Below are positions 46,564 through 63,644 of a stretch of DNA of 64,000 nucleotides, piece after piece. The position numbers and the translations under genes were made by a program. The notes beneath the pieces were generated by a model, which saw only the letters and a program-made list of their open reading frames with translations, ran no database searches and was not told where the DNA came from. Each line of letters starts with the position of its first letter. The stretch's first letter is position 1. Location: sequence record NC_019410.1. One strand, written 5' to 3'.

Positions 46564-46592
46564 TTGACACGCCCGCAGGGCCGCGCTAACCA
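46564..46592 (+). promoter_or_regulatory. sigma70-type promoter
   Basis: TTGACA-N17-TAACCA upstream of the 373-aa gene. Confidence 0.55.
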
Positions 46593-46744: not shown

Positions 46745-47866
46745 ATGCCCCGTGGTCCGCTGGTCGAGAAGTACGTCAAGGGCAAGCTCTACAGCCAGCG
46801 CCAGTTCCGCCGGCTCATCATCGACACCCTGCGGGCCATCCTCGATCTGCCCGGCTACGAGAAGGGGGCGCGCGCCCGCGACATCGCCGACAAGTTCGGC
46901 GACCCCGCCTGGGTCGAGGCCGAGAACCTGCGGCTGATCGCCGTCACCCTGAACAACCTCAAGACCCAGGGGCTGGTCAAGCAGATCGAGCGCGGGCTCT
47001 ACAAGGTCAACGAGGCCAAGGTCGATCTGGGCCTGGACCAGATGGAGCAGACCGAGCAGACCATCGCCGAGGTCCTGCGGGCCGAAGGGGGCTACGCCAA
47101 GCGCCGGGTGATCGACCGCGAGCACGACGCCGACAGCCAGTCGACCGACGTCAAGGCCGGCGACATCCAGCGCACCCTCACCCGCGTGCTGATGAACAGC
47201 CAACGAATCCAGAAGGCCTACGGGGGGATGGTCTACGCCTTCTACAACCTCCCCCAGGCCGAATTGTCCCTCCTGCCCCAGATGGGGAAGTGGCTCCACC
47301 TCCAGTCGGCCGCCGCCACCCGCATGCTGACCGGCCAACCCTCCCACGAGGTCTACGGCCTGATCGAGAAGGCCACCCGCCTCCAGTACCGCCACATCGG
47401 GGCGGTCTTCAAGTTCGTAATCGACCACATCGACGAGGACTTCGCCGACGCCGCGCGCGGCTTTGAGCCCCTGCACGAGGCGATGGCCGAATTCAACGAC
47501 GCCTTCTCGGACGTCAACGCCGGCGCCCGGAACAAGATCGAGGACCGGTTCGGCCCCGAAGGCGAAGACCACCGCCAGATGCGCGAGGCCGGCAAGACCT
47601 ACACCGAGATCGACGACGCGCGCGAAGCGGCCTTGCGCGCCTACGACGCCGAAGCCCCGCTGCGGCTGATCGACCTCTTCTGCGAGGGAAACCCCCAGGC
47701 CCACGAGCGCGCGCCGCTCTCTTTCTACGAGGCGTTCGCCGACTGGGCGATGCTCGACGCGGCCCAACTCAGCCGGGGCATCCTCGTCGCCGACTTCACC
47801 CGCGCCAAGCGGATCAAGAAGCTCGACGACCGGGAAGACGGCCCGCTGCCCGGCTATGAGGGCTGA
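46745..47866 (+). CDS. 373-aa DNA-binding protein with tandem wHTH-like domains (candidate replication initiator or regulator)
   Basis: GAGGAA RBS; ARDIADKF...IAVTLNNLKTQGLVKQIERGLYKV; directly followed by AT-rich island. Confidence 0.7.
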   Translation: MPRGPLVEKYVKGKLYSQRQFRRLIIDTLRAILDLPGYEKGARARDIADKFGDPAWVEAENLRLIAVTLNNLKTQGLVKQIERGLYKVNEAKVDLGLDQMEQTEQTIAEVLRAEGGYAKRRVIDREHDADSQSTDVKAGDIQRTLTRVLMNSQRIQKAYGGMVYAFYNLPQAELSLLPQMGKWLHLQSAAATRMLTGQPSHEVYGLIEKATRLQYRHIGAVFKFVIDHIDEDFADAARGFEPLHEAMAEFNDAFSDVNAGARNKIEDRFGPEGEDHRQMREAGKTYTEIDDAREAALRAYDAEAPLRLIDLFCEGNPQAHERAPLSFYEAFADWAMLDAAQLSRGILVADFTRAKRIKKLDDREDGPLPGYEG

Positions 47867-47920
47867 TCGGCTGGAGGCCCAAAAGGGCTGGCCGCTCTGG
47901 GTTTGTCAACCAAAGCCCTA

Positions 47921-48172
47921 CTCCTCTATGGTCCATAAAGGTACACATATTAAATACATTCTTAGTTTACTCTGTATATGTAAACCTCTCCCTATACTCT
48001 CTATACCCTCTAAAAGCTAACCTAATTAAATACATAGTTAGTAATATGTGTGTCTTTCTACCATTTTACTACCCAGTTATTTATTATAGTTAGTTTTTCT
48101 CCTATAGTGTAGGGTAGAGAAGAGAAGAAAGGATGAAAAGTGGACTATCTACTAAATGAATAGATAATAATC
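47921..48172. other. AT-rich non-coding island, candidate replication origin
   Basis: 68 G+C in 230 nt (about 30%) over 47941-48170; IR ACACATATTA/TAATATGTGT; DR ATTAAATACAT. Confidence 0.55.
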
Positions 48173-48456
48173 CCTGCCGGGCAGACCTCGAAATTGGCGT
48201 CGAGCAAATCCCGAGCAAATCCTGGTCGCCTCGCCGCCTCGCCGAGGGGATCGACACGGTATGCAGGACCCGGAGGGAGAGCGGAGCGTGTCCAGGCCGT
48301 GTCGGCGGTGGTCCTGGCGATCTCCCTGCCGGGAGACCCGTCGACCGCCCAACCCGTCGACCGTCCTGCCGAGAAACGACCCGTCATCCAACACGGCGTC
48401 CAGGTCCCGGAGGGCAAGAGCCCGATAGGGCGGGTTCGGGCCGTGTCGGCGGGGAG

Positions 48457-48485
48457 TTGACAGTCGTTGATCACGACGCTAGACG
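48457..48485 (+). promoter_or_regulatory. sigma70-type promoter
   Basis: TTGACA-N17-TAGACG; CACGACG/CGTCGTG inverted repeat spans the -10. Confidence 0.55.
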
Positions 48486-48567
48486 TCGTGAATCTTGACA
48501 TACGCCCGTCTGCATGAGAGACGTGGTTAACGAGATGGGCTGCTCCAAGGCCCCTCGGGAGCCACCC

Positions 48568-49278
48568 ATGCCGACCCCCACCACCCTCCGCTCGACCTCG
48601 CCGTCCGATCCGCGCCCCACCGCCATCGACCCTGACGTCCTGGCCCTGGCGATCGGCAAGGTCCTGCCCGACATCCTGGGCTGGGCGCGTCTGCGCCAGC
48701 CGGGCTTTGGCGAGGCCGATGTCCACCACGCGGTGGTCACGGCGCTGCACATCGCGGGCCTCGACGCCTTCCGCCTCGGCGTGGTCCTGGCCTCGCAGTT
48801 CAACTGGTCGGTCGACTACAGCCTCGTGCGCCTGCTCGACAGCGTCATCGAGGCCCTGCCGACCGCCTACCGGGCGGTGACCGGCCGCTGGGTCGCCCGC
48901 ACCGGCACCCGCTTTCCGGCCAAGGAAGGCGACACCATCGAATTCCTCGACGCGGCCGGTCGCCGCCGCGTCGGCAAGGTGGTCGGGGTCGCGGCCCTGA
49001 CCGCCACGGCCTATGTCCAGCCCGCCGTCGGCACCGAGTTCACCGATCCGCCGGTCGAGATCGCCGCCGAGGCGGTGGTCGCCAACGTCACCCAGAAGCG
49101 CTACCAGCCCGAGCACCCGATCCTGGGCGCACGCTACGATGACGCCCCAACGCTGGGGGCTCTGGCCGAGGCCGAACGCGCCCGCCGCACTGACGCGGCG
49201 GCTTCGCCGAGGACGCCGGCGCCCCACCCGCACCTGACCGACTTCCGCCCGGACCCTGACGGGCCGGCCATCGCCTGA
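48568..49278 (+). CDS. hypothetical protein (236 aa)
   Basis: GGGAG RBS before ATG 48568. Confidence 0.7.
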   Translation: MPTPTTLRSTSPSDPRPTAIDPDVLALAIGKVLPDILGWARLRQPGFGEADVHHAVVTALHIAGLDAFRLGVVLASQFNWSVDYSLVRLLDSVIEALPTAYRAVTGRWVARTGTRFPAKEGDTIEFLDAAGRRRVGKVVGVAALTATAYVQPAVGTEFTDPPVEIAAEAVVANVTQKRYQPEHPILGARYDDAPTLGALAEAERARRTDAAASPRTPAPHPHLTDFRPDPDGPAIA

Positions 49279-51792: not shown

Positions 51793-54525
51793 GTGAGCTA
51801 CTATCCGATCGAGGACCGCGCCAAGGCCCGGTCCGTCGTCAAGAACCTGCTGGACCTTCAGCGCGAGGCGGTCAAGGCCTCTCGCGGCGGCCTGATCCTG
51901 CCGCCCGACCAGAAGGCGATCATCACCCAGGTCACCGAGACCGAGGACCCGGCCCGCTGGGTCGACCTCCTGGGTCAGTTCGCCGATCGCGTCCAGACCG
52001 ATCACCTCGCCCGGCTCAAGCCCCTGGCCAAGCACGACTTCAACGCCTTCTGCGAATACGTCAACCCCGAGGAGGCCCCGGCCTCCAAGTGGCACGTCTA
52101 CCTGACCTCGCTCCTCCAGGAGATCGAGAACAACCACGAGCTTGAGCGCTTCGTGCTCAACTGCCCGCCCGGTCACGCCAAGCCGCTCGACGTCGACACC
52201 GAGGTCCTGATGGCCGACGGGTCCTGGAAGCGCCTGGGCGACATCACCGTGGGCGAGTACGTGGTCGGCGAGAGCGGCGCGCGCTGCAAGGTCACCGCCG
52301 TCCACGAGCAGGGCGAGCTTGCCACCCTGAAGATCACCACCGCCCACGGCCGCCAGATCATCGCCGCCCCCGATCACGCCTTCCGGGTCGGAAACACCTG
52401 GAAGGAGGCGGGCAAGCTGCGGCCGGGCGACGCTCTGTCCGTGGTCGGCGCCGCCAACCTCAACTACGACGCCAGCGGCAAGACCATCGACCACTTCGAG
52501 CTTGCCGCCTACCTCCAGGCCAAGGGCGGACGCTCCTACTTCCACCGCGTCCACAAGAGCGGGCCGAAGACCTACCGCAACGTCTTCCTGTGGACTTCCG
52601 ACCACCGCGAGGCCAGCAAGATCAGCGCCTGCCTCAAGCGCCTGGGGATCGCCTTCAAGGGGCGTCTGGCCAAGCACGAGCAGGTCTGGAAGATGCGTCT
52701 GGCCACCGAATGGGGCGACGCCCTGGCCGAGGAGTATGGCCTGGACGCGCGGATCGACGCGCGGCGGGTTCCGGCCTTTGTCACGAAAGGCGACGAGGAG
52801 CAGATCGCCCGCTACCTGTCGACCTACGCCTCCCTGGCCGGCGAGGCGCCCGACCGCTACACCATCCCGCGCATCATCCTCTACTTCAAGAACCCGGCCT
52901 TCGCCCGCGACATCCAGCGGCTGTTCGCCGTGGTCGGCGTCAACGCCCGCATCGAGGGGCGCAAGACCGGCCGCACCCGGCTGATCCTGTCGGGGCCGGA
53001 CCTGGAGGCCTACTTCGCCGCCGGCCTGACCTACACCGGCCCCAACGCCGACAAGCTCGACGACAAGCGCGTGGCCTTCCCGACCTCGCCCTCGCTGCTG
53101 GCCGACACCGTCACCTGGATCGAGCCGCACGGCGTGCGCCCCTGCCGCTGCCTGACCGTCGAGGACGAGCACACCTTCATCGCCGAAGGCGTGGTGGTCC
53201 ACAACTCGACCTACGCCTCGCGCCTGTTCGTGGCGTGGCGCCTGGGGCGCGATCCGCGCCAGAAGATCATCGGCGGCGGTCACTCCCAGCGCTTCGTCGA
53301 GAACGAGTTCTCCGGCAAGATTCGCAACCTCGTGCGCACCCCGCAATATCGCGACGTGTTCCCCGACGTGGTCATCGACCACGCCACCTCGGCCAAGGAC
53401 ATGTGGGCGATCGCCGGGCACGGCGGGCAGTACGCCGCCAAGGGCGCGGGGCAGGCCATCCACGGTCTGCGCGCCCACTTCGTCTGCGTCGACGACCCCT
53501 ACCGGTCGATCGAAGTGGCCGAGTCCGCGATCGAGCGCGAGAAGATCAAGACGTGGTTCTTCGGCGACGTTGGCTCGCGTCTGTTGCCGCTCGCCAAAGT
53601 ATTCCTCATCATGACGCGCTTCCATGAGGAAGATTTGACCGGGGAGATCATCAAACTCAACCAAGAAGTTCTCACCGGCGCCGACCGTTATCACATCGTT
53701 GAAGCGCCCGCCCTGTGCTACGACCCCGAGAACGACGTCCTGGGCCGGGCTCTGGGCGAAGTTTTGTGGGACTACTATGACTTGCATTATTTCAAGCGCA
53801 AGCGGTCCGAGTGGAAGTACCAAAGATTTGCTTTGGTTTATCAACAACTTGCCGACGCGGCCTCGGACACCTCCATCGCGTCCAAGTTTCAGACCTACGA
53901 TCACCTGCCCCACCTGGAGCCGAAGGTGCTCAAGGCCCGGCTTGACGCGGGTCACGCCGACGAGCGCGGGCGGCCGATTCCGGACCGCAAGGAGCACTTC
54001 CGGCGGGTGGTGGTCAGCGTCGACTCGGCCAACAAGCCCGGCGCCCGCAACGACTACAGCGTCGCCCAGGTCTGGGGGGAGACCCACGCCCGCAAGCACT
54101 ACCTGATCTACCAGGAGCGCAAGAAGGTCGACATCACCGGCCTGACCGAGATGATCGAGCGGGTGGCCAAGCGCTACGAGGTCGACGCCATCCTGGTCGA
54201 AGACAAGGGCAACGGCACCGCCTACATCCAGGCGCGGGGCCAGACCGACAGCCAGCGGCGGCTCGCCCCGGCCCCGATCGAGGCGATCCAGGTCCCGAGC
54301 ACCTATTCCAAGGAGTTCCGCTTCAACGAGATCGTCCCGATGATCGAGGCCGGCGAGGTCTTCCTGCCGGGCAAGGCCCCGTGGCTCGACCTGCTGATCC
54401 GCGAAATCGGTCAGTTCCCCGAAGGCGCCCATGACGACCAAGTCGACGCCATGACGCAGTACCTCCGCTGGGCCAAGTCCAAGCGCACGCGGTTCGGCGC
54501 GCGCAAGGTCGGCTCGATGGGCTGA
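51793..54525 (+). CDS. terL: terminase large subunit with intein (910 aa precursor, ~569 aa spliced)
   Basis: Walker A PPGHAK/S split by intein; Walker B FVCVDDP; coupling motif MTRFH; nuclease VVSVDSA...NDYS...HDDQVDAMTQ. Confidence 0.95.
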   Translation: MSYYPIEDRAKARSVVKNLLDLQREAVKASRGGLILPPDQKAIITQVTETEDPARWVDLLGQFADRVQTDHLARLKPLAKHDFNAFCEYVNPEEAPASKWHVYLTSLLQEIENNHELERFVLNCPPGHAKPLDVDTEVLMADGSWKRLGDITVGEYVVGESGARCKVTAVHEQGELATLKITTAHGRQIIAAPDHAFRVGNTWKEAGKLRPGDALSVVGAANLNYDASGKTIDHFELAAYLQAKGGRSYFHRVHKSGPKTYRNVFLWTSDHREASKISACLKRLGIAFKGRLAKHEQVWKMRLATEWGDALAEEYGLDARIDARRVPAFVTKGDEEQIARYLSTYASLAGEAPDRYTIPRIILYFKNPAFARDIQRLFAVVGVNARIEGRKTGRTRLILSGPDLEAYFAAGLTYTGPNADKLDDKRVAFPTSPSLLADTVTWIEPHGVRPCRCLTVEDEHTFIAEGVVVHNSTYASRLFVAWRLGRDPRQKIIGGGHSQRFVENEFSGKIRNLVRTPQYRDVFPDVVIDHATSAKDMWAIAGHGGQYAAKGAGQAIHGLRAHFVCVDDPYRSIEVAESAIEREKIKTWFFGDVGSRLLPLAKVFLIMTRFHEEDLTGEIIKLNQEVLTGADRYHIVEAPALCYDPENDVLGRALGEVLWDYYDLHYFKRKRSEWKYQRFALVYQQLADAASDTSIASKFQTYDHLPHLEPKVLKARLDAGHADERGRPIPDRKEHFRRVVVSVDSANKPGARNDYSVAQVWGETHARKHYLIYQERKKVDITGLTEMIERVAKRYEVDAILVEDKGNGTAYIQARGQTDSQRRLAPAPIEAIQVPSTYSKEFRFNEIVPMIEAGEVFLPGKAPWLDLLIREIGQFPEGAHDDQVDAMTQYLRWAKSKRTRFGARKVGSMG
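52183..53205 (+). mobile_element. intein (341 aa), Pro1 / Cys-F4, degenerate LAGLIDADG domain
   Basis: Starts PLDVDTEVLMADGSWK; block B AAPDHAF; block F CRCLTVEDEHTF; ends GVVVHN with Ser+1. Confidence 0.92.
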
Positions 54526-56226: not shown

Positions 56227-56258
56227 TTAACGGTTTGTTAACATGTCGGCGCCAGGGT
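56227..56258 (+). promoter_or_regulatory. CtrA-box promoter 2
   Basis: Perfect TTAA-CGGTTTG-TTAAC-N10-CAGGGT. Confidence 0.8.
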
Positions 56259-62366: not shown

Positions 62367-62547
62367 GTCATCATTCCTATCGTCTATGACTTGTCACCGG
62401 CCGAACTCTTGCCCGGTGACAGTCTGGGCAAGTAAAGCTCACTCTGGATTTTATGACTTAGCGCAAAGGATTGAAATTGCTCGAAAAATTCCTCGAAGCT
62501 CACAAAGTTGTTTTCTGGCTGCTTTTGCTGGCCTGTTTGTGGCGCTT

Positions 62548-62613
62548 TTAACGGTTTGTTAACCCCTGGCCCTCTAGGGTCGAATTCCCGGCGCGGCAAT
62601 CCCGCCGCCCGGC
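62548..62613 (+). promoter_or_regulatory. CtrA-box promoter 6 plus AATCCC-loop hairpin
   Basis: Perfect TTAA-CGGTTTG-TTAAC-N11-TAGGGT; GCGGC-AATCCC-GCCGC. Confidence 0.8.
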
Positions 62614-63223: not shown

Positions 63224-63616
63224 ATGGCTCGCCCCTCTGACCTGCTCAACGTCAACGCCGCCCGCGTCCTGGCTTGCCTTGAGCCTATCGCCGCCGCCGC
63301 TAAGACCGCCCCGGCCGCCGACCGCGCCGCCCTTTCCTACCTGCTCGACGCTGGCGAGTATGTCGCCGCGTGGCGCCGCAACCTCACGGAAACCGACCGC
63401 CGCAAGGCCTATGGCGCGGCCTGCGCCGCCGAAGCCCTGGCGCTCGCTAACGCCTATCAGCCCGCCACCCTGCAAGGCGGCGCCGTCCGCCGCGCTCTGG
63501 GCGCCTATGCCGCCGCCCTAAAGGTCCTGCTAGACGGGGAGCCGGTCAAGGCGGTGCGCGCCGCCGAAGGCGCGGCGCTTTCGGTCCGCGCTCGCTACGC
63601 CAACACCCGCCTTTAA
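63224..63616 (+). CDS. hypothetical Ala-rich protein (130 aa)
   Basis: GGATCGC leader. Confidence 0.7.
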   Translation: MARPSDLLNVNAARVLACLEPIAAAAKTAPAADRAALSYLLDAGEYVAAWRRNLTETDRRKAYGAACAAEALALANAYQPATLQGGAVRRALGAYAAALKVLLDGEPVKAVRAAEGAALSVRARYANTRL

Positions 63617-63644
63617 CCTCTTGTTAACACCTCCCGGCTATGGT
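63613..63644 (+). promoter_or_regulatory. CtrA-box promoter 8
   Basis: Perfect TTAA-CCTCTTG-TTAAC-N10-TATGGT; first TAA is the upstream stop codon. Confidence 0.8.

Follow-up and report, generated by a model that had tools for sequence, protein, structure and literature searches.

Where do the phiCbK-like phages of Caulobacter start to replicate their DNA? The question is raised by one locus of CcrKarma, a jumbo siphophage of this group (Dolichocephalovirinae, Shapirovirus), in which an AT-rich island of repeats directly follows the gene of the hypothetical protein gp326. It is pressing because these phages have recently been reported to persist as stably inherited, replicating episomes, and an origin was merely postulated to explain this persistence (Mohammadi & Ely 2025, PMC12195562). 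No origin is named for phiCbK-like phages by Gill 2012 (PMC3556154), and a text search of the literature found no paper on the origin of these phages. A first-pass annotation of the locus, made from the letters alone, had likewise known of no defined origin, which agrees with both papers, and had proposed a phage origin plus initiator here. The DNA analyzed (the window) comprises the last 64 kb of the 221,828-bp record (NC_019410.1, 157829-221828), to which BLAST matched it with 100% identity; unless a position is given as kb of the genome, coordinates refer to the window. Based on the anatomy of the island, its comparison among 12 phages, and a structural model of gp326, we regard the island as the best candidate so far for the origin of the phiCbK relatives.

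The island (47920-48175) corresponds to 205.7-206.0 kb of the Karma genome and has its phiCbK counterpart at ~199.65-199.95 kb. Its GC content is 31%, with a 100-bp minimum of 26%, in a genome of 66% GC. Described at first as the most AT-rich stretch of the window, it was found to be the GC minimum of the entire genome as rebuilt from the record, where the runner-up has 39%. It lies in the 701 bp between gp326 (46745-47866, 373 aa) and gp327 (47867-48567), which carry non-coding annotation, in line with the earlier description of a non-coding stretch directly after a 373-aa protein. The short repeats that had been listed in it were all located exactly at their positions: the inverted pair ACACATATTA (47943) and TAATATGTGT (48042), the direct pairs ATTAAATACAT (47949 and 48025) and ATAGTTAGT (48034 and 48086), GTTTAC (47965) with GTAAAC (47980), and a tract of 85% pyrimidines (47985-48011) together with one of 93% purines (48111-48140).

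A repeat finder revealed these short repeats to be fragments of larger units, each consisting of a pyrimidine tract and an AT-rich core of ~30 nt. Two direct units, 76 bp apart, are followed by a third, inverted one. Unit 1 (47915-47966, + strand; direct repeat D1) joins the pyrimidine tract GCCCTACTCCTCTATGG (47915-47931) to core 1 (47937-47966), its register being read from the sequences. Unit 2 (47985-48048, + strand; repeats D1, I1, and I5) joins the pyrimidine tract 47985-48011 to core 2 (48012-48048), which forms the left arm of a dyad. Unit 3 (48062-48140, - strand; repeats I1 and I5) contains core 3 (48062-48098), the right arm, and ends in a purine tract on the + strand (48099-48140) with the sequence GGGTAGAG. 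The 30-nt direct repeat (47937-47966 versus 48013-48042) is 77% identical at a spacing of 76 bp, and the 37-nt dyad (48012-48048/48062-48098) is 73% complementary. In Karma alone, the direct repeat beat 299 of 300 dinucleotide shuffles, and the dyad was not significant (112 of the 300 shuffles did equally well). That the pattern is not due to chance is shown by its recurrence in every other lineage of phages examined. No core-like sequence was found elsewhere when the 221.8-kb Karma genome was scanned from end to end; the island is unique.

The comparison covered Karma and 11 other phages from at least four genera plus Brevundimonas phages, namely phiCbK and ten more diverged relatives (Ccr5, Rogue, BL57, CcrBL10, Colossus, CcrPW, CcrSC, and the Brevundimonas phages Bajun, Bambus, and Kabachok). 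Homologues of gp326 were found in all Dolichocephalovirinae checked, those of the ten diverged phages being 24-57% identical (tblastn). Directly after each homologue follows a gap of 565-1006 bp that holds the GC minimum of the locus (26-38%). The island sequence is 94.7-100% identical within the Karma/phiCbK group and not alignable beyond it. Its plan, as established by side-by-side reading and the repeat finder, is common to all: a unit combines a pyrimidine tract (approximately CCCCTAnnC) with an AT-rich core of ~30-36 nt, two to five units are arranged directly, and an inverted core lies opposite the last direct core at a distance of 7-25 nt (56 nt in CcrSC), which gives the array a large imperfect dyad at its end (70-86% complementary). 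The inverted unit closes with a purine tract, and in 12 of 12 phages the right edge of the island is marked by the motif (T)GGG(G)TA[TAG][AG]G of this tract; in Karma this motif occupies 48112-48119 on the + strand, within the purine tract of unit 3.

The period of the arrays is conserved as well. The top direct-repeat offsets in ten phages were 76, 76, 79, 79, 76, 77, 78, 79, 76, and 77 bp, and the degenerate array of Rogue gave 76 bp, so that the best offset fell at 76-79 bp in 11 of the 11 phages tested for repeats, Karma included. The chance of such an offset is ~3% per lineage (a band of four values among 121 possible offsets). At least seven of the core types share no recognizable sequence. 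The arrays of Bambus and Kabachok, with five direct cores and one inverted core, look like textbook protein-binding repeats. Island-like, repeat-bearing gaps were also found behind more distant metagenomic homologues (contigs L024/L025, L029, and probably the truncated L026). To judge from these sequences, the island is a real cis element, conserved throughout the subfamily, with repeats of the type expected for protein binding.

Gene and island form one module. The genome of Ccr5 is Karma-like on both flanks of the locus (89% and 96% nucleotide identity), with no similarity to Karma from ~46960 to 48188 and a resumption at 48189 with 96% identity. Over this same interval, which spans leader, gene, and island, Ccr5 shows one continuous match of 78.6% nucleotide identity to CcrBL10. 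The right breakpoint of the replacement coincides with the right edge of the island, where a small GC hairpin (CCTGCCGGGCAGG, 48173-48188, strand not assigned) bounds the exchangeable cassette; this hairpin was flagged as terminator-like on the minus strand, and its fold was not significant. The gene and the array downstream of it were therefore exchanged together and are inherited as one unit. At the protein level, the homologue of Ccr5 is 77% identical to that of BL10 and 36% identical to that of Karma, and the nearer the proteins, the more alike are the cores: Karma and BL57 share GTTAGTAATAT, and Ccr5 and BL10 share ATGCT...TTAAT. The pyrimidine/purine tract remains constant across the phages while the cores diverge. 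Adjacency in 12 phages and the joint replacement in Ccr5 thus indicate that the island is coupled, both physically and evolutionarily, to the adjoining gene.

The protein encoded by this gene (CcrKarma_gp326, YP_006989706, + strand; gp311 of phiCbK) is proposed here to bind the island. It has no match in Pfam or NCBIfam and belongs to PHROG 10876, which is classed as of unknown function. A profile search of 1.8 billion representatives retrieved 114 clusters of the family, mostly full-length at 340-430 aa. An AlphaFold2 model, computed with 65 cluster members as alignment, reached a pLDDT of 93.9 and a pTM of 0.86. According to this high-confidence model, gp326 consists of two tandem winged helices and a helical domain. 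The first winged helix (aa 14-96; 46784-47032, + strand; pLDDT >95) resembles, over residues 18-96, winged helix-turn-helix regulators of the DtxR/IdeR, IclR, and MarR types and linker histone H1/H5 (VIA-align Z 8.8), and gave a weak H1x profile match. The second (aa 97-177; 47033-47275, + strand) is forkhead-like, with Z 7.9-8.6 for residues 90-172 against the DNA-binding domains of FoxP4, FoxA2, and FoxM1 (VIA-align). The two are duplicates of each other, as hhalign of residues 6-96 against 97-178 gave a probability of 82% (E 1e-5). The tandem winged-helix-like segments first noticed in the translation were thus confirmed by the model, the fold matches, and the duplication. The all-helical C-terminal domain (aa 181-345; 47285-47779, + strand) has conserved F312, G315, and H320 and an LSRG motif (342-345); it found no match in the PDB, AFDB clusters, BFVD, ESM Atlas, or Pfam.

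Fold searches with the gp326 model (Foldseek and a wide VIA-align search against the PDB; AFDB clusters, BFVD, and ESM Atlas) returned generic winged helices and its own orthologue only. A comparison with Rep folds, which the first-pass annotation had suggested, gave no Rep chain among the 50 best structural matches of each search, and Rep families were matched neither by gp326 (Pfam, NCBIfam) nor by any of the 65 family members (Rep hidden Markov models). With its tandem winged helices gp326 therefore shares a fold class with Rep, and kinship is not established. Likewise, no Pfam match to a Phage_rep_O-type domain was obtained for gp326 or the 65 members, and an AAA+ module had no Pfam match, the model comprising only the two winged helices and the helical domain. 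A weak match to the winged-helix family ORC4_C occurred in one of the 65 members (E 3e-4). AbiEi was matched weakly at the segment of the first winged helix only (aa 42-94, E 2e-4), and in eight of the 65 members. Karma has no nucleotidyltransferase gene adjacent to gp326. In a 279-kb metagenomic jumbo-phage contig (L022 6362-9026), a distant homologue does lie directly after genes for a Thg1-like and an RlaP-type nucleotidyltransferase, and, judging by this context, members of the family beyond the phiCbK group may have other partners.

What might such a module do? On the evidence of sequence and model, the island would be a unique cis site bound by gp326, and most probably a replication origin with its initiator; we hold this reading tentatively, as somewhat less than an even bet. 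In the mechanism that we propose, gp326 would bind each asymmetric AT-rich core of ~30-36 bp as a monomer-type ligand, with one winged helix per half-core. Two to five direct cores lie at the fixed 76-79-bp phase, the last of them facing the inverted core in a dyad that has the pyrimidine tract to its left and the complementary purine tract to its right. Several gp326 molecules on the phased array could then assemble into a higher-order complex, in which the DNA may be wrapped, on the least stable duplex of the genome. The likeliest purpose of this complex would be to open the DNA and to recruit the replication proteins of the phage (helicases and a T7-like DNA polymerase), which would make the island the replication origin of phiCbK-like phages and gp326 its origin-binding initiator. 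In favor of an origin we count the least stable DNA of the genome, the phased sites around a dyad, the uniqueness of the site, a partner with a DNA-binding-type fold, and conservation throughout the subfamily, as well as the borders of the gap, which opens with a canonical terminator in Colossus and closes with conserved promoters of its own.

Several observations weigh against an origin. Kinship of gp326 to Rep_3, lambda O, Orc/Cdc6 or AAA+ initiators, ParB, or recombinases was not detectable by sequence or fold, and the repeat period of 76-79 bp is unlike the 17-22 bp of classical iterons. The gap contains no DnaA boxes (≤1 mismatch) and the island no CtrA boxes (TTAA-N7-TTAA). GC skew, named at the outset as a check, follows gene orientation: the cumulative curve turns only where transcription turns (~81, 114, 122, and 165 kb of the genome), and at the island the skew keeps its sign and only grows more negative rightward (-0.042 to -0.094), opposite to the step at a classical origin. 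Furthermore, the module lies far from the block of replication genes (81-114 kb of the genome), beside resolvase and terminase genes, and the distant metagenomic homologues L011, L022, and L028 have no island downstream. Finally, binding of the cores by gp326, formation of a complex on them, and a replication start at the island are our inferences. Of the original proposal of an origin plus initiator, a conserved, unique cis element coupled to a tandem winged-helix gene is supported; neither homology to a known initiator nor a skew signal was found.

Repeat arrays in cis with a cognate binding protein are known from other replicons; here the protein family is uncharacterized and the repeat geometry unusual. 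The Rep initiators of iteron plasmids (RepE of F, RepA of pPS10, and pi of R6K; Rep_3) have two tandem winged helices and bind asymmetric repeats as monomers. Like their origins, the Karma locus has a gene adjoining AT-rich repeats, direct repeats with an inverted copy, and a specificity pair of protein and repeat, and the monomer binding assumed above is a property of Rep. However, gp326 has no Rep hidden Markov model match and an additional helical domain of 165 aa; the island repeats with a period of 76-79 bp and cores of ~30-36 nt instead of 17-22-bp iterons, its units carry a pyrimidine/purine tract, it has no DnaA boxes, and its inverted copy is not located at the gp326 promoter. Lambda O with ori-lambda and G38P of SPP1 with oriL are phage origin binders with an N-terminal domain of the winged-helix type, several repeats beside an AT-rich stretch, and co-variation of protein and origin. 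Winged-helix phage protein, repeats near AT-rich DNA, and co-variation of protein and site are found in Karma too. Their origins lie inside the initiator gene and have four repeats of ~19 bp, whereas the Karma cores are long-period units downstream of the gp326 stop codon, with none inside the gene.

Archaeal Orc1/Cdc6 origins, especially haloarchaeal ones, reportedly contain ORB elements. These origins share with Karma an AT-rich island beside the initiator gene in a high-GC genome, and boxes of ~30-36 bp that end in a G-run, stand in inverted orientation on the two sides of the unwinding region, and are recognized by a winged helix. The resemblance is confined to the layout, and gp326 has no AAA+ module. 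Among centromere-binding adaptors, TubR is a winged-helix protein, and oriP of Epstein-Barr virus combines direct repeats (the family of repeats) with a dyad symmetry element. With TubR-tubC, ParR-parC, SopB-sopC, and oriP the locus has in common a unique, phased repeat array with a dedicated protein encoded next to it, binding by gp326 being proposed. It differs from these centromeres and oriP in the absence of a partner NTPase gene and in repeat length and period, and no relationship of sequence or fold was found.

The resemblance to centromeres leads to the rival that we take most seriously, although we consider it unlikely: the array could be a partition or episome-maintenance site and gp326 its centromere-binding or tethering protein. 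The anatomy (a unique site, phased repeats, and a co-inherited winged-helix protein) fits equally, stable episomal persistence is on record for the subfamily (PMC12195562), and the lack of an origin-type skew signal would pose no problem. Nevertheless, no NTPase of the ParA, ParM, or TubZ type was found beside the module, and the annotation of the genome lists no Par or Tub protein; gp324, gp325, gp327, gp328, gp330, and gp331 have PHROGs of unknown function only and no Pfam or NCBIfam match, with no PADLOC match for gp327 and gp330-331 either. In addition, being the least stable DNA of a genome is not a requirement for known centromeres. We rank behind this, as an unlikely reading too, that gp326 is a regulator and the array an operator or insulator that autoregulates gp326 or times the operon of gp327, resolvase, and terminase. 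Both winged helices are most similar to transcription factors (DtxR/IdeR, IclR, MarR, and forkhead), and the island, which RNA-seq contigs cross, separates the end of one transcription unit from the conserved tandem promoters that serve the following one. The cores, however, end ~320 bp upstream of the gp327 promoters and lie downstream of gp326, away from its promoter; core copies were found neither near either promoter nor elsewhere in the genome; and an operator needs neither five phased units nor the GC minimum of the genome.

The location of the island invites a reading as an accessory site for packaging or concatemer processing, that is, a helper site of the terminase or a cruciform or hairpin by which the 10-kb terminal repeat is duplicated. 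A hairpin-type duplication of the terminal repeat has reportedly been proposed for T7, the array ends in a large imperfect palindrome, and genes for a RuvC-type resolvase, TerS, and TerL follow immediately downstream in conserved synteny. We nonetheless find this improbable: the mapped boundary of the terminal repeat is 5.6 kb away, inside terL (53747; PMC3556154), with its own conserved sequence, TerS is a protein distinct from gp326, and the dyad is imperfect (70-86% complementary), with neither strand clearly outfolding its shuffles (z -1 to -2). Very improbable, in our view, is a structured non-coding RNA. A long hairpin of pyrimidine tract, cores, and purine tract can be drawn, a -10-like TATAGT precedes the purine tract (by eye), and the island is spanned without a break by RNA-seq contigs of four phiCbK infection libraries, which means that reads cover it. 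The depth of these contigs is flat by construction and they carry no strand, so that read-through transcription and carried-over phage DNA are inseparable in them. Rfam 15 gave no match in the window at the gathering score (mir-71, below threshold on both dyad strands, scored 26.5 bits versus 50), and folding did not stand out from shuffles on the + strand (z -1.1) and was marginal on the - strand (z -2.0). The mismatches of nine dyads (12 G.T, 17 A.C, and 41 other) show no wobble bias on either strand, as chance predicts without selection for RNA pairing, and the extra direct copies at the fixed 76-79-bp phase have no role in a hairpin. Transcription of the island as a non-coding RNA, which would have spoken against the first-pass proposal, may in part be reflected in the read coverage and is not supported by Rfam, folding, or the wobble test, and we read the repeats as DNA sites for a protein on account of these negative results and the phased direct copies.

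Three further candidates were rejected. A T7-type promoter was considered for TATAGGGAGA on the - strand of unit 2 and dropped, as a single-subunit RNA polymerase was not detectable in the set of large unannotated proteins and the rest of the genome shows no enrichment of the purine motif. A T5-like injection-stop signal, to which the A1 homologue of the phage had drawn attention, was judged unlikely; the island lies outside the terminal repeat, 16 kb from the right end. An attP-like site of a tyrosine or serine recombinase was discarded, given that the C-terminal domain of gp326 is all-helical and has no match to Phage_integrase or any other Pfam family even at E 10.

Returning to the origin, a more elaborate version can be drawn, which we consider speculative and distinctly unlikely in its entirety, more so than the partition or operator readings and less so than a packaging site. 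It would be a new type of phage origin, in which a phased gp326 scaffold, with 76-79 bp per unit or about one superhelical turn wrapped, opens the AT-rich dyad. The outward-facing purine tracts would serve as start sites (a G-run and then polypurine, the left units using the - strand and the right unit the + strand), and the purine-rich transcripts might remain as persistent RNA-DNA hybrids and act as primers in the manner of polypurine tracts. Bidirectional synthesis by the T7-like polymerase would follow, in a phage without a recognized primase, and the same site could be used for lytic and episomal replication.

The transcription signals around the island were read from sequence. For gp326, a candidate host sigma-73-type promoter (46564-46592, + strand; by eye) comprises TTGACAC, 14 nt, and GCTAACCA, the -10 element being weak. 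In Colossus and CcrPW the gp326 homologue starts a divergent transcription unit and therefore has its own promoter there. Just after the gp326 stop codon, a GC-rich hairpin can fold (47865-47897, + strand) that has no U run and is thus non-canonical as a terminator in Karma. Colossus has a canonical, annotated intrinsic terminator at the same place (fold z -7.6), and CcrPW, Bambus, and Kabachok show a GC hairpin with a T run behind it, the fold of Bambus (z -0.63) being no better than its shuffles. At the other end of the gap, two tandem sigma-73-like promoters are predicted for gp327 and the resolvase-terminase operon (48457-48519, + strand), one with TTGACAG, 14 nt, and GCTAGACG, the other with AATCTTGACAT, 10 nt, and GCATGAGA. 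Their AATCTTGACA box is kept in 11 of 12 phages (CcrSC has TTTCTTGACG) and in the metagenomic relative L029, and is far better conserved than the surrounding spacer.

In this GC-rich spacer, a tandem 11-mer occurs in two copies (CGAGCAAATCC, 48201-48222, + strand; direct repeat D2) and is also present in phiCbK and Ccr5. Compared to phiCbK, the Karma spacer has 52 additional bp (48317-48370) that are rich in short CCGTCGACC-type repeats. A 30-nt element that includes the palindrome CTGTCCATATATGGACACTTAGCG is present twice in the GC-rich spacer of Bajun (L013 7870-7965) and looks like a separate operator-like site between island and promoters. Directly 5' of gp326 (46532/46538), Karma lacks a segment of ~320 bp that bears the small gene gp310 in phiCbK. 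The first gene beyond the gap, gp327 (48568-49278, + strand), is a conserved syntenic neighbor of the function-unknown class, for which scans of Pfam, NCBIfam, and PADLOC gave no match. It is followed on the same strand by the RuvC-type resolvase gp329, TerS gp332, and the intein-containing TerL gp333. The TerL gene (51793-54525) carries Hint and LAGLIDADG homing-endonuclease signatures in its intein and contains the physical left end of the genome, the 10.25-kb terminal repeat starting within it at 53747.

Host-factor sites are found elsewhere in the window. Three perfect CtrA-type boxes (56227-56241, 62548-62562, and 63613-63627), two of them identical (TTAACGGTTTGTTAA), all lie in the terminal repeat, against a chance expectation of 0.01 per window; this is in line with a published report that CtrA sites of phiCbK-like phages cluster in their terminal repeats (PMC9437464). 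Besides the island, only two regions of the window fall below 45% GC per 100 bp. One (53750-53858) coincides with the terminal repeat's left boundary within terL and has a DnaA-box-like TTATCAACA at 53838, and the other (62407-62569, 39% GC) contains one of the CtrA boxes.

Some records are irregular at the locus. The circular records of the Brevundimonas phages Kikimora (L020) and Gurke start 120-170 bp past the stop codon of the gp326 homologue, and the metagenomic contigs L024, L025, and L026 end 61-390 bp after it. Assemblies seem to break in the repeat island, for which its nature may account. The homologue of BL57 is annotated as two open reading frames (L005 1781-2820) and that of RBC57 matches in four pieces (PV231353.1 74960-76075), despite 98% identity; frameshifts or sequencing errors may underlie these splits.

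The classic phage of Caulobacter, phiCbK, is also the type of a siphophage subfamily with genomes of 200-350 kb. For this subfamily, what was a vague AT-rich spot has become one delimited, genome-unique candidate with repeat units, a conserved period, a purine motif, and a model of its cognate protein, and the natural specificity variants (the Karma, Rogue/BL57, and Ccr5/BL10 types) are ready-made material for swaps. If the island is the origin, gp326 would found a new family of initiators, which counts more than 100 sequence clusters in metagenomes and whose long-period repeat geometry is unusual. Should the island be a centromere or a switch instead, it would still be the main cis-regulatory landmark of these genomes.

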